IMG/VR virus record: IMGVR_UViG_3300018080_000098
Location: 186,001 to 250,000 of that record
Length of the DNA: 64,000 nucleotides
Reading direction: 5' to 3' (one strand)
A program made the translations under genes and the position numbers. The notes beneath the pieces are model-generated. The model was not told where the DNA came from and ran no database searches. It saw only the letters and a program-made list of their open reading frames with translations. Shown here one piece after another: positions 27,522 through 35,996 of the stretch (position 1 is its first letter; each line of letters starts with the position of its first letter).

Positions 27522-28559
27522 ATGGACACAGACGACATCAACACCATCCAGGAGCTCATCGACGAAGACCCTCCCAACCTCGAGCCCAGCAACCACTCCA
27601 GTTGGGCCGTAGCCAACTTCAAAATAATCGCCATTTTGCTAGCCATTGGTCTGAGCCCGGTGTGCACCTACTTCGGTTCCGGGCGCGTTGAGAAAATTCG
27701 CACCAAGTTCGAACGGGAAGACCGGGCGAAGAAGCGCGAAACGCAGTTACGCATCCATCGCCAGAAGATGCGGACCACTTTGGTCAAAGAGGTGGTGTCC
27801 ATCGCGAAGAACGCCGACCTGGACAACGTGGCTCACGCGTACCGTATCGGACTCATTGCGGAAATCGTGATGTCCAATCCTGATGTGTTCAAGCTGAACA
27901 TGCGGGACGCGAAGGACAAGTTGGACGTCATCATCAAAAAGATGAAGGTGGTTCACAACATCCGCAAACAGCTAGCTGAAACGGAGAAGAGCGAGGCGGA
28001 GCTCCAGGGGAAGGTGAAGCGGTACGATAAGGAGAACGTGAACCTCGAGAAGAAGCTGAAGCGCATGAAGAAGAAGTACGACGCGGTGAAGTGGCGCAGC
28101 TACAAGGATCGCATGAAGTGGCAGAAGAAGGTGGAGAAGGTAGAGAAGGCACTCAAGGACAGCCGTTTTCGGAGGCGCATGTACGCGGAGCGATTGCAGC
28201 GGGAACGCCGTCGTAGGCGCCTGTACGCTCACTATCTTAGATACACGCAGCGGCGGTTGCAGAAGAAGGTCAACGCGGCGCAGACGGCCAAGAAAAAGAG
28301 CGATCTGGAAGTCAAGAAGCTCAACGGGGTGCTAGCCACGCTGGAGTTGAAGACTTCCACTGCGAGCAAAGAAATCAAGCAGCTGAAAGGCTTGGTACGG
28401 AAGCTCACGAAGGCAAAGCAGGACAGCGAGGCTACGGCTCAGGACTTGAGCGACGAGGTGAAAAAGCTGAAGGCAGCGAACAAGGTACTCCGGTCTGACA
28501 ACAAGACACTCATGCAGAAGGTGGCAGAGTGCAAACCGAAGAAGGCAATGACTCCATGA
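27522..28559 (+). CDS. membrane-anchored basic coiled-coil protein
   Basis: single hydrophobic helix, then long K/R/E heptad region. Confidence 0.6.
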   Translation: MDTDDINTIQELIDEDPPNLEPSNHSSWAVANFKIIAILLAIGLSPVCTYFGSGRVEKIRTKFEREDRAKKRETQLRIHRQKMRTTLVKEVVSIAKNADLDNVAHAYRIGLIAEIVMSNPDVFKLNMRDAKDKLDVIIKKMKVVHNIRKQLAETEKSEAELQGKVKRYDKENVNLEKKLKRMKKKYDAVKWRSYKDRMKWQKKVEKVEKALKDSRFRRRMYAERLQRERRRRRLYAHYLRYTQRRLQKKVNAAQTAKKKSDLEVKKLNGVLATLELKTSTASKEIKQLKGLVRKLTKAKQDSEATAQDLSDEVKKLKAANKVLRSDNKTLMQKVAECKPKKAMTP

Positions 28560-28864
28560 TAAATACATCGATACCGTCTATGATTCGAGTTGATGGCGTC
28601 AGGTACGCTCGAACTACTTTAACGTACGAGGAGGTGGGTGCGCGTGGCGCTGTCGAGGTGGGGATGGCATACGATTCCAGTGGAAAGGCTTACCCTGGCT
28701 GGGCCGACAAGACAGGCCGGAAGTATGCTGAAGTCAGTCCGGACCGCGAGAAGGGGGAACGTGGTCAGGTTTTTATGCGGATCGATAACAAGGAAGGCTG
28801 GCGCTGGGAATGGGATGAGGGGACGAGTCAGGAAGACGTGGACAACTTTCCTGATTACATGTAG
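28556..28864 (+). CDS. hypothetical protein with PSMIRVDGVRY N-terminal motif
   Basis: motif shared with 31896, 32428, 33131 and 33404. Confidence 0.55.
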   Translation: MINTSIPSMIRVDGVRYARTTLTYEEVGARGAVEVGMAYDSSGKAYPGWADKTGRKYAEVSPDREKGERGQVFMRIDNKEGWRWEWDEGTSQEDVDNFPDYM

Positions 28865-28865
28865 C

Positions 28866-29036
28866 CTAGCGCGGCTCGTCGTTCCCTCTTCTGGCTAGCT
28901 TCTCTCCTACCTTTTCAGCGATTGCGTACAGAAGGAACTGATTCAGACTGGTCCCTTCTTTCTTGGCAATCTTCACACATTTTTCATGAAGCGAGGAGGG
29001 GAGACGGAGTAATATTCTGCCGCTGTACTTCTTCAT
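28866..29036 (-). CDS. HicB-family ribbon-helix-helix antitoxin-like protein (56 aa)
   Basis: MKKYSGRILLRLPSSLHEKCVKIAKKEGTSLNQFLLYAIAEKVG, translated by hand; below ORF-track cutoff. Confidence 0.7.
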   Translation of the reverse strand: MKKYSGRILLRLPSSLHEKCVKIAKKEGTSLNQFLLYAIAEKVGEKLARRGNDEPR

Positions 29037-29602
29037 CAATCTGTCAAAAACAAGAAGGGGTCTTCAGTGACTACCCAGGCATCCAACATGTGCTCTGATT
29101 CTAGCCAGGTTCTCGGTGTGTCTGGTCCTGCTAACCGAGGTAGCTTGCTTGTATCTTTCGGCACTTTGAGTGTGACGATTTTGTCTTCCTTTGCCAGGTA
29201 GAACGAGCAGCTATCGTTTGCCACTTCGGCTTCCGTAATACGGGTACCCACCACAAGCTCTGCTACTTCGTCCCATTTACCGCCATCTGCTTTGTTGTAG
29301 TAGCTAAAGAGAGGCTTCTGGATGTGGTAGTACTTCGGATGGGCACCCACCCAACGATCGTCGAGCAGGAGCCAGCTGTCAGCTCCCCACAACGTGAGAA
29401 CCAACCACTCCGTGGATCGACTTTCGTTTCCGTCCAACCGAAACCCGACGAATCCGGGACCGCCCATGCCGTAGCTACCGAGGTGGGAGCTCCACTCGAG
29501 GATGACGCGGTTCAGGATGTTATTGGTGCCGACTTGCCGCAACGTGGGTGGAGGCTTCCCAGTAGCTTTCACGATGCTCGCTATGATGTTGGAGTTTTCC
29601 AT
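29036..29602 (-). CDS. hypothetical protein
   Basis: ORF with LGSYGMGGPGFVG motif; start moved to the ATG outside the tRNA-like element. Confidence 0.55.
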   Translation of the reverse strand: MENSNIIASIVKATGKPPPTLRQVGTNNILNRVILEWSSHLGSYGMGGPGFVGFRLDGNESRSTEWLVLTLWGADSWLLLDDRWVGAHPKYYHIQKPLFSYYNKADGGKWDEVAELVVGTRITEAEVANDSCSFYLAKEDKIVTLKVPKDTSKLPRLAGPDTPRTWLESEHMLDAWVVTEDPFLFLTD

Positions 29603-29604
29603 AT

Positions 29605-33796: not shown

Positions 33797-33804
33797 GGAG
33801 GACA

Positions 33805-34333
33805 TTAGCTTCCCACTCCTTGTGTTTGGTTTCTACCCGGTGACCACCACCGAGCTTTGAATCTCTGCCACCAGGAACTCTCGAGATCCTGAATCTTCTC
33901 CTTGAGCTTGGAGATCTCCCTTTCCTGAGTTCTCCGCTTCGCCCACTCCTCCTGCATGTAATCGTGGTGCTCCACGAAATCCACCATCCGAAGCAGGGAC
34001 AACGTACTCAAATATTTCCCACGGATACTCTTGGGACCAGGCTTGACCCCCAGAGCCATCACCTGCCCAGCATACCTCCCGGCAGATTCGACTACGCGGT
34101 GCACAGGTACACCACGCTCCTCGAGCTCATCCGCAAGTTCGCAGAGCTCCCCTTCGGTTTCTACACCGAGAGCAACAGCATATGTTCCGGGACTTAGGTT
34201 ACCGTCCGAGGATTCCCCGCTGGCGTGGACACACTGCGCAAAGGCAATGCCCACGGGCAGGTCTGTCCGAACAATGCAGTAATGGCAAATGGGGTCGTGG
34301 GAGGCTTGCTGACTGTCAAGGGAGGTTACGCAT
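33805..34333 (-). CDS. PTH2-like peptidyl-tRNA hydrolase (start unresolved; possible +1 frameshift)
   Basis: YCIVRTDLPVG...AQCVHA...VALGV..E.EL...VVE...GQVMALGVKP...LSLL. Confidence 0.75.
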
Positions 34334-34376
34334 TTTTCTTGGCTCCTTGGTTGCGCGTTTTTTGTTCGACCACCCA

Positions 34377-34405
34377 AGCATAAGGACACCGCTCCACGAT
34401 GTCAA
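34377..34405 (-). promoter_or_regulatory. sigma70-like promoter for the PTH2/tRNA-like cluster
   Basis: TTGACA-17nt-TATGCT. Confidence 0.7.
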
Positions 34406-34490
34406 GCAGAAAAAGCAAACTTTTTCGTAAGTCAGCGCAACCATAGTTAGTATTTGGTACAAAAACTTCACCAAAACACCCCAAACGACC

Positions 34491-35996
34491 ATGCAAACAG
34501 TACCACAAACGCTCCGCTACCAAGGTACCACCTACGACCTGGTAGAAGCAGCTGACAGCTCCCCCGAAGACCTCAAAGCGTACCTCCACAGCGCCCGACG
34601 AGCCTTCAACCGCCTCGTCCGCGAAAGCGGCAAAGCTTCAGCTCTACGACACCAAATCGAAGAGACCACCGACGACCCCAAGAAAGCCCAGTCTACCTGG
34701 TCCACCCAAGCTCCTAAACACCCCGCTATCAAGAAGTTCCTCAAACGCTTCAACGTCACCGGAGACAAAGAGAAATTCCTGCTCTCCAAACTCCGAGACG
34801 CCGTCTTCGGCAAACCCCGAGACGAAGCATGGAACAGCTTGCGTCGTTACCTCGAAGCCGCCTACATCGCCCAGCAACGAGAGAAAGCTCGAGAACCCGC
34901 AGTCAAAGCTGGTATCCCCAAGGAAATCATCGAGAAGTTCTTCCCCAAGTCCTTCGCTTTCGACGTGGCTCCCGATGGCAAGCTCGTCCGAGAGTTCGAG
35001 GTGTTCGGGAACGAAAAGAAAACCATCGAGGCTAAGCGCAAAGCTATGCGCATTCTGCTAACCAGGTGGAACGACCTCGTGGACCGTATCAACCGGGACC
35101 TCCAATCTACCAACCCCATCCGACGCCTCGAAGCCCTCGTTACCTCTATCATCATCCATACTGGTATCCGTCCTGGTGAGGGTGGAGAATCCAAGCTCAA
35201 GGACGACTTCGGGAAAATCATCCGTGACGACGAAGGTAAGCCTATCCGAATCAAAACCGTCGGTGCCACCGGTATCAAACCCGAGCACGTCGATTTCGTT
35301 CGAGACGACTTCGCCGTTATCGAGTTTCCCGGTAAAGCTGGTACCAAGAACGTCGCGGAGCTCACTGACCCTAACATCGTCCACGCTCTTCAAGAACAAA
35401 TACAACTGGTAGAGCAGGACAACGAGGACCTCGCGTTCGTAGCTCCTACGGGAGAACGAGTCACCCCGAAACGTATCAACCGTTACCTGCGCAGCGTCCT
35501 CGGGCCCGGTGTCACCGCCAGCGACTTCCGGAAGCTCAAGGCTACCCAGACCTTCTACGATTCCCTGAACCAACGTAAGCACGAGCTCGTCGCGCGCTTC
35601 AAAAACCTCAAGGAGCTCACGAAGGGCGACATGCGAGAGCAAATCGTCTCCGCCATCGTCGACTACCTCTACGAAGCCGCCGAGCACGCCCAAGAAGCCA
35701 TTAGCCACACCGACGTAGAAACCACTCTGGAATACTACATCACTCCTCGCGTTACCATAGACTACCTGGCCGGGAAGGGTGTGAACCGAGCTCTGGACGT
35801 TGTGGTCGGTGACGGTAAAGAGCTCCAGGTCAACTTCGATCCACTCGACTTTTTCGAGACGATGACGCGAGACGTCGAAGAGAAAGCAGCCTCGGTACAA
35901 CGTACAGCTGCTACGCTGTTCTACTTCGGTGATGAGTTCGTTGACTACAACGTCGACGACGCCATCGAAGAGCTCGAGGAAGACTCCTCTAGATAA
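34491..35996 (+). CDS. DNA topoisomerase IB-like protein
   Basis: catalytic-type residues in TGIRPG, FPGKAG, SDFRK, ISHT and LEYYI. Confidence 0.85.
   Translation: MQTVPQTLRYQGTTYDLVEAADSSPEDLKAYLHSARRAFNRLVRESGKASALRHQIEETTDDPKKAQSTWSTQAPKHPAIKKFLKRFNVTGDKEKFLLSKLRDAVFGKPRDEAWNSLRRYLEAAYIAQQREKAREPAVKAGIPKEIIEKFFPKSFAFDVAPDGKLVREFEVFGNEKKTIEAKRKAMRILLTRWNDLVDRINRDLQSTNPIRRLEALVTSIIIHTGIRPGEGGESKLKDDFGKIIRDDEGKPIRIKTVGATGIKPEHVDFVRDDFAVIEFPGKAGTKNVAELTDPNIVHALQEQIQLVEQDNEDLAFVAPTGERVTPKRINRYLRSVLGPGVTASDFRKLKATQTFYDSLNQRKHELVARFKNLKELTKGDMREQIVSAIVDYLYEAAEHAQEAISHTDVETTLEYYITPRVTIDYLAGKGVNRALDVVVGDGKELQVNFDPLDFFETMTRDVEEKAASVQRTAATLFYFGDEFVDYNVDDAIEELEEDSSR

Follow-up and report, generated by a model that had tools for sequence, protein, structure and literature searches.

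A recurrent short motif, predicted to be a hairpin, on unrelated proteins of an uncultured 350-kb tailed phage: a candidate docking tag for the phage head

Encapsulin cargo-loading peptides and the encapsulation peptides of microcompartments are short terminal tags, set on flexible linkers and sometimes repeated, that bind inside a protein shell, and the encapsulin shell has the HK97 fold. In phage T4, the internal proteins and Alt enter the prohead core by means of a core-associated N-terminal capsid-targeting sequence (CTS) of 10-20 residues, which gp21 removes (PMC5694885). In giant phages, genes for many head-internal proteins lie close to those of the head, N-termini that diverged paralogues have in common have been described as CTS-like, and propeptides are thought to act as the T4 CTS does; for SPN3US, the scaffold counterpart is unconfirmed and only long propeptides are suspected as signals (PMC5694885). 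Here we describe a motif of ~14 residues that recurs across ~29 unrelated open reading frames (ORFs) of an uncultured tailed phage from a sediment metagenome (IMG/VR record IMGVR_UViG_3300018080_000098, a single record of 349,793 bp with direct terminal repeats, rated complete), and that was noticed in a 64,000-nucleotide stretch of it, bases 186,001-250,000, hereafter the window. The giant-phage setting is one that the motif shares with SPN3US- and phiKZ-type propeptides, whereas those propeptides are mostly >100 residues long and form paralogous families.

A preliminary description of the window had reported that the ORFs starting at 31896, 32428, 33131 and 33404 are nearly identical for 19 residues and then diverge, and this holds, with all coordinates and peptides present. 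The ORFs, which need no alternative genetic code, share the start M-[SP]-K-[RQ]-P-P-x-x-I-R-V-N-G-x-x-Y-V, and each is preceded by a GGAG-type ribosome-binding site 7-10 nt upstream. Once the four are aligned with four further tagged proteins, only P6, I9, R10, V11, G13 and Y16 remain invariant and conservation is gone after residue ~20, and among the tails of the four ORFs the best BLASTP pair reaches only E = 0.3. The 58-nt DNA copies of the tag in these ORFs are just 71-76% identical, and synonymous differences outnumber non-synonymous ones in every pair (12 versus 3 of 19 codons between 33131 and 33404, for example), so that the peptide is under selection and the copies are not a recent duplication. 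The same two observations rule out a DNA repeat or a regulatory element in place of a peptide.

Over the whole genome the motif follows the consensus [A/P]-P-x-x-[IL]-[RK]-[VY]-x-G-x-x-Y-x-x-[AV] and comes in two interchangeable flavours, I-R-V-N-G-x-x-Y and I-[RK]-Y-K-G-x-x-Y, which alternate within one relative's array of paralogous small genes and so make up one family. The 350-kb genome contains 9 matches to the strict pattern P..[IL]R[VI][ND]G..Y, all of them in open frames of the plus strand, and none appears in any of 20 codon shuffles, while the Y-flavour pattern [IL]-[RK]-Y-[KRQ]-G-x-x-Y gives 15 matches, the start of a topoisomerase IB included, compared with 0-1 in shuffles. A profile built from a 31-row, 19-column alignment and applied at a threshold of >=10 bits recovered 37 copies in ~29 ORFs, against 1 in a control of reversed ORFs, and weaker copies added by eye bring the total to ~40-45. 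Codon shuffles and reversed sequences together exclude a chance origin, and the motif is thus real and more widespread than had been noted, with most copies lying outside the window. The variants that had been pointed out at 28556, at the topoisomerase start and inside the ORF at 15094 all score as family members in the profile. The start of the ORF at 28556 overlaps the stop (ATGA) of an upstream ORF that encodes a 345-residue coiled-coil protein, and a Pfam search with the 252-residue protein at 15094 gave no convincing match.

Evaluating where the copies sit within proteins, we found a methionine 0-5 residues upstream in 22 of the 37, against an expected 8.6%, such that the earlier picture of an N-terminal tag fits these copies and does not fit the remainder, which are internal, tandem or C-terminal. 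At least four copies are C-terminal and end 0-3 residues before the stop codon, ~10 are internal or tandem, some proteins carry the tag at both the N- and the C-terminus, and several hold 2-4 copies separated by Pro/Glu-rich spacers of 5-12 residues. In the 15 residues that follow the motif, Glu and Lys are enriched ~2-fold and Pro and Asp 1.4-1.5-fold, and hydrophobic residues are depleted.

AlphaFold2 models contain a beta-hairpin in the modelled carriers, in line with what had been proposed from the sequence. In the 153-residue protein, strands at residues 8-11 and 14-17 (predicted local distance difference test, pLDDT, ~79) are followed by residues 21-26 at <50 and then by helices. In the model of the DUF5661 protein, whose gene lies downstream of the major capsid gene, a folded N-terminal domain precedes three hairpins that stay separate; a disordered stretch rich in lysine comes next, and a small helical domain and a hairpin at the C-terminus complete the chain. 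From these models the motif is predicted to fold on its own into a beta-hairpin of two strands that turns tightly at the invariant Gly and is joined by a flexible charged linker to unrelated proteins. From beta-strand geometry we infer that Ile, Val/Tyr and the invariant Tyr lie on one face of the hairpin and the conserved Arg/Lys on the other. This design resembles autonomous hairpins with an Asn-Gly turn such as that of the T4 fibritin foldon, the C-terminal trimerisation unit of one fibre protein, in that both have a two-residue N-G/D-G type turn and a cross-strand hydrophobic/aromatic pair, although the likeness is structural only.

Several proteins with 2-4 copies and short linkers between them, together with a split in valency between multi-copy proteins of the head module and single-copy small proteins, could also mean that the hairpins pair with one another, such that carriers of 3-4 copies assemble into a network or inner body and single-copy proteins attach to it as clients. 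Homotypic assembly of this kind would be compatible with a head core, yet AlphaFold2 leaves the three tandem hairpins of the DUF5661 protein unpacked, like beads on a string (pLDDT 34-44), and we regard it as improbable.

Neither the tag nor its small carriers, the 153-residue protein included, match any family in Pfam or PHROGs. Among PDB sequences the motif profile reached at best E = 0.48, too weak to carry meaning, so that neither the foldon nor any other PDB chain matches in sequence, and a feature search of the ESM Atlas returned no usable match. With these sources all empty, a known domain or repeat family was rejected. When the alignment of tagged proteins was run against 5.8 billion proteins in a word-indexed search, which is limited by its length window and by the shortness of the motif, it returned self matches only. 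Our verdict is that the tag has no sequence or structural relative among those searched and would belong with the terminal targeting peptides for protein shells.

One enzyme that carries the tag in the window is a topoisomerase IB, with a catalytic core that matches PF01028 Topoisom_I at residues 195-367 (E = 3e-12, 46.8 bits against a curated cut-off of 23.7). That its start is a variant of the tag is borne out both by the profile, where it is a Y-flavour member, and by its orthologues, ten of which were found, all with a Topoisom_I domain. Among orthologues at 43-64% identity, a hairpin motif of the form [hydrophobic]-x-[YFV]-x-G-x-x-Y is preserved in most at the N-terminus, inside the first ~20 residues, and the linker after it varies. 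Poxvirus topoisomerase is packaged in virions, to which a tagged topoisomerase IB may be a parallel. A basic/aromatic hairpin that binds nucleic acid and anchors proteins on DNA or RNA would explain this carrier together with a double zinc-ribbon protein and a protein with a long K-rich segment. The conserved R/K and Tyr, a basic lead-in that often reads K-R-P-P-K-R, and the Arg-rich N-termini that a distant relative has in place of the tag point the same way. Against this, the conserved face is hydrophobic (I, V/Y, Y), acidic linkers usually follow the motif, the PDB sequence search found no similarity to any solved nucleic-acid-binding chain, and most carriers have no other DNA-related feature, leaving nucleic-acid binding, in our view, a doubtful explanation.

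The distribution of copies along the genome is uneven (Table 1). A head module occupies genome 272.5-285.7 kb on the plus strand, and its major capsid protein matches the solved HK97-type capsid protein 6wkk (E = 2.8e-15, profile positions 84-370). Carriers are densest in the 5.7 kb after the capsid gene, which holds 11 of the 37 copies, and none falls in the 165-kb minus-strand block at 9-174 kb that makes up 47% of the genome and contains PolA, replication and tail-fibre genes. The other clusters, at 174-181 kb (11 copies, after the DNA ligase gene), 214-221 kb (the ORFs noted at the outset) and 260-263 kb, sit among small genes without known function, and a PHROG scan of the neighbours of the cluster at 174-181 kb yielded nothing informative.

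Table 1. Tagged proteins of the window and genes of the head module and its downstream region. Coordinates are window positions unless marked as genome positions; bit scores are those of the motif profile.
Feature	Coordinates	Strand	Tag and remarks
252-residue protein	15094..15852	+	one tag copy at residues ~42-58 (15202-15258), acidic leader before it; 19.8 bits
102-residue tagged protein	28556..28864	+	I-R-V-D-G variant tag; 16.6 bits
153-residue tagged protein	31896..32357	+	tag at residues 1-19 (31896-31952), then disordered linker and helical body (ORF; AlphaFold2 model)
115-residue tagged protein	32428..32775	+	tag 32428-32484; 26.3 bits
89-residue tagged protein	33131..33400	+	tag 33131-33187; 28.4 bits
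73-residue tagged protein	33404..33625	+	tag 33404-33460; 31.1 bits; starts 3 nt after preceding gene
Topoisomerase IB, 501 residues	34491..35996	+	N-terminal Y-flavour tag 34497-34553; 18.7 bits
Portal	genome 272.6-275.0 kb	+	head module
Prohead protease	genome 278.1-279.0 kb	+	head module
280-residue protein, gene after protease		+	tag at true start; orthologue in relative L134 tagged likewise
Acidic 234-residue scaffold-like protein		+	head module, after 280-residue protein
261-residue virion structural protein		+	head module, after 234-residue protein
Major capsid protein	genome 284.6-285.7 kb	+	head module
375-residue protein, gene after capsid gene			N-terminal, internal and C-terminal tag copies
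DUF5661 protein	genome 286991-287965		four tag copies
606-residue protein, downstream of capsid gene			three tag copies
Several small proteins downstream of capsid gene			N-terminally tagged

These positions bear on the idea that the tag docks proteins on a hub outside the virion, such as a replication or transcription factory, a chaperone or modifying enzyme of the phage, or a target in the host. The genome encodes, besides tailed-phage families (tail-fibre/spike, tail-sheath, portal, head maturation protease and major head protein), NAD-salvage genes (NAD, nicotinamide adenine dinucleotide) and a BrxL-like Lon ATPase, a set of replication-type genes that comprises a fusion of PolA with uracil-DNA glycosylase (UDG), type II topoisomerase subunits, DnaB, RecA/UvsX, a clamp-loader subunit and ligase. 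The phage thus has replisome parts of its own (clamp-loader subunit, DnaB, PolA), the majority of its tagged genes are found outside the head module in company with small early-like genes, and N-terminal, C-terminal and internal copies on unrelated proteins, DNA enzymes included, are reminiscent of clamp-binding motifs. Docking on such a hub is opposed by the strong clustering of tags, in this phage as in three relatives, on genes next to those of the protease and capsid, and by the lack of any copy in the block with the replication genes, and we consider it unlikely, if a serious alternative.

Turning to relatives, no relative of this phage was found among deposited phage genomes, and its major capsid protein has no close relative among phage records. 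The same protein has >100 metagenomic homologues, on contigs of up to 382 kb (64-382 kb). Within ~10 kb of the capsid gene, the relatives with capsid identities of 80%, 74% and 62% carry 10, 6 and 12 tag copies respectively, and in the last of these the capsid gene is followed by nine small genes in a row that all start with M-K-T-P-K-x-I-[KR]-[YV]-x-G. At a capsid identity of <=58% the profile yields no copy, or just one or two weak ones. Neither topoisomerase IB nor the strict DNA pattern PP..IRVNG..YV returned a match when looked up in IMG/VR. A looser degenerate DNA pattern found at least 117 loci there, which were mostly unrelated families that hold the string (P2-like tail proteins and others); the true relatives among them amount to five fragments, and fragments of the same phage were also returned. 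On IMG/VR fragments of relatives the motif profile counted 13, 21, 14 and 5 copies. The absence of homologues of the small tagged proteins among 5.8 billion proteins, set against the more than one hundred of the capsid protein, is the pattern that a set of fast-turning-over cargo would be expected to leave.

More distant relatives carry terminal peptides of other kinds. In one whose capsid protein is 58% identical (L135:2214-20678), a tag of the I-Q-V-G-D-Y-I-Y-K type with the Gly shifted by one position was seen by eye at both termini of proteins, and it is also found on a HAD-family (HAD_SAK_1) enzyme. In another at 58% (L140:11281-20522), nearly every gene downstream of the capsid gene has, again by eye, an Arg-rich M-R-x-R-R start, and three of the proteins with such starts end in E-F-E-[RQ]-S-Y-F-G-R. 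The terminal peptides of L135 and L140 look like lineage-specific replacements of the tag, and these variants, as judged by eye, suggest that shared terminal tags with lineage-specific sequences may be a general habit. The DUF5661 gene is syntenic with the major capsid gene across 45-80% capsid identity (relatives L134, L136 and L138), its hairpin tags are limited to the closer relatives, and in L134 the protein is fused to a cREC_REC domain.

A terminal hairpin with a linker to unrelated cargo, single- and multi-copy carriers, a tag that is conserved while the cargo turns over, and clustering on genes beside those of the protease and capsid in four genomes together find their best explanation in a tag by which proteins dock on the head as it assembles. 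We accordingly favour, tentatively and with slightly less than even confidence, a prohead/capsid-targeting or core-docking tag that would work like the T4 CTS while being unrelated to it, and the T4 analogy is a reasonable working model. As with the CTS of T4 IPI-III and Alt, a short common terminal peptide is found on unrelated, fast-evolving small proteins plus an enzyme, and docking on the prohead core is the presumed route by which cargo would be packaged and later ejected. In this phage N-terminal copies make up the majority, and it is around the protease and capsid genes that the tag is concentrated. The tag differs from the T4 CTS in that it is a predicted beta-hairpin and is also placed internally, in tandem and at C-termini; it has no sequence resemblance to the T4 CTS as judged by eye only, without alignment to a T4 CTS sequence. 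Encapsulin and microcompartment peptides are alike in being linker-joined terminal tags on unrelated cargo, and this phage's capsid protein matches an HK97-type protein as the encapsulin shell does, whereas those peptides are extended or helical and differ in sequence.

How such docking might proceed can be sketched from the carriers. The hydrophobic face of the hairpin (Ile, Val/Tyr, Tyr) would bind a common putative receptor in the assembling prohead, with the scaffold/core or the inner capsid surface as candidates. Single-tag proteins would then be head-internal cargo, probably ejected, and the putative cargo would comprise the small variable window proteins, the topoisomerase IB and the zinc-ribbon protein, while proteins with 3-4 tags that are encoded right after the capsid gene may serve as multivalent parts of the core or scaffold. 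That the tag binds a head component, and that tagged proteins are packaged and ejected, is something we only infer.

Three observations weigh against head docking as modelled on T4. Internal, tandem and C-terminal copies are a misfit for a cleaved N-terminal propeptide of the T4 type, about two-thirds of the copies are encoded well away from the head module (genome 174-181 kb; window 28-36 kb), and no uniform protease site follows the tag, an [AV]-E pair at Y+3/Y+4 being present in ~12 of 31 aligned copies. The packaging or docking tag that had been put forward at the outset, with T4 as the precedent, is partly supported. Tag genes adjoin the protease and capsid genes here and in relatives, a hairpin is predicted, its carriers are unrelated and the topoisomerase variant belongs to the family, but placement is not strictly N-terminal and no consistent protease site follows the tag. 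A single co-fold of the major capsid protein with a 45-residue tag region (score 0.04, mark 0.32) weighs neither way.

The residues after the tag also raise the possibility of a recognition handle or degron for the prohead protease or for the BrxL/Lon-like ATPase, both of which the genome encodes; such a signal would determine when tagged proteins are removed or processed. Degrons typically sit at a terminus, and L-A-E or L-V-E after some tags is like the L/I-x-E site of T4 gp21. Such E-containing sites nevertheless occur in a minority of copies, nothing links the Lon-like gene with the tagged genes, and we judge a handle of this sort highly improbable. The four alternatives that we have set beside head docking (another hub, nucleic-acid binding, a homotypic network and a protease handle) each retain appreciable weight.

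A bolder form of the head-docking reading, which we offer as speculative and rather unlikely, is that proteins are loaded into the heads of an uncultured clade of huge phages by an evolvable 'postcode'. Dozens of cargo proteins, among them an injected topoisomerase IB and arrays of small effectors that are rapidly replaced, would then bear one and the same hairpin, the multi-hairpin proteins encoded beside the capsid gene would be the receiving core, and the code would drift between lineages: the turn is N-G in this phage and G-D/G-N in a lineage at 58% capsid identity, and a further lineage has Arg-rich N-termini. If so, a phage's injected arsenal could be read directly from sequence, and the tag would offer a portable minimal handle for loading foreign proteins into large capsids.

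How giant phages choose the proteins that are loaded into the head and co-injected with DNA is largely unknown, and a short tag that can be read from sequence would help. It would turn ~30 uncharacterised proteins per genome into a defined, testable class and would mark fast-evolving small genes as candidate injected anti-defence effectors. Should the tag dock on another hub instead, it would still define a new interaction motif of phages whose clients can be identified.

Several further features of the window and the genome were recorded alongside the tag. A cluster of transfer RNA (tRNA) and tRNA-like genes on the minus strand, window 29600-33800, is interleaved with the tagged ORFs on the opposite strand. 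Rfam tRNA matches lie at 29605-29679, 32864-32938, 33018-33093 and 33640-33718, a 141-nt match at 31718-31858 possibly contains an intron, and weak RNA matches are YrlA-like (29752-29863) and mascRNA-like (33727-33795). ARAGORN assigned a 4-base anticodon 'taag' at 29604-29680 and a 2-base anticodon at 33640-33718. Between the tRNA-like genes, two adjoining genes (window 30131-31372, minus strand) encode a full-length DUF7873 protein (E = 5e-93) and a 166-residue protein with a CopG-antitoxin-like segment.

A promoter common to the tag genes was sought among enriched upstream motifs and rejected, as the enriched motif CTTGTAAAATA is found genome-wide and is not specific to tag genes. The promoter-like motif, C-T-T-G-T-A-A-A-A-T-A, usually preceded by CATC or CACC, has ~35 sites across the genome, 20-90 nt upstream of genes and on both strands (plus-strand examples at window 15860, 17039, 18189, 36010, 45805 and 57813), and its 8-mers are enriched 8-10-fold upstream of genes.

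The DNA polymerase A gene (genome 60099-63134, minus strand) has an N-terminal domain of the uracil-DNA-glycosylase superfamily and a C-terminal zinc-ribbon-like segment, and the same genome encodes the BrxL-like Lon ATPase, NAD synthase and NAPRTase. A 327-residue ORF at window 46243-47226 (plus strand), ~50 kb from the real capsid gene, weakly matches the major-head-protein PHROG phrog_2522 over its C-terminal ~60 residues (E = 1.7e-5) and may be a diverged capsid-protein paralogue or fragment. Finally, a partial match to the bacterial small signal recognition particle RNA (window 5087-5131, plus strand, 43 bits, model positions 23-67) comes immediately after a tRNA-Met gene at window 5010-5083.

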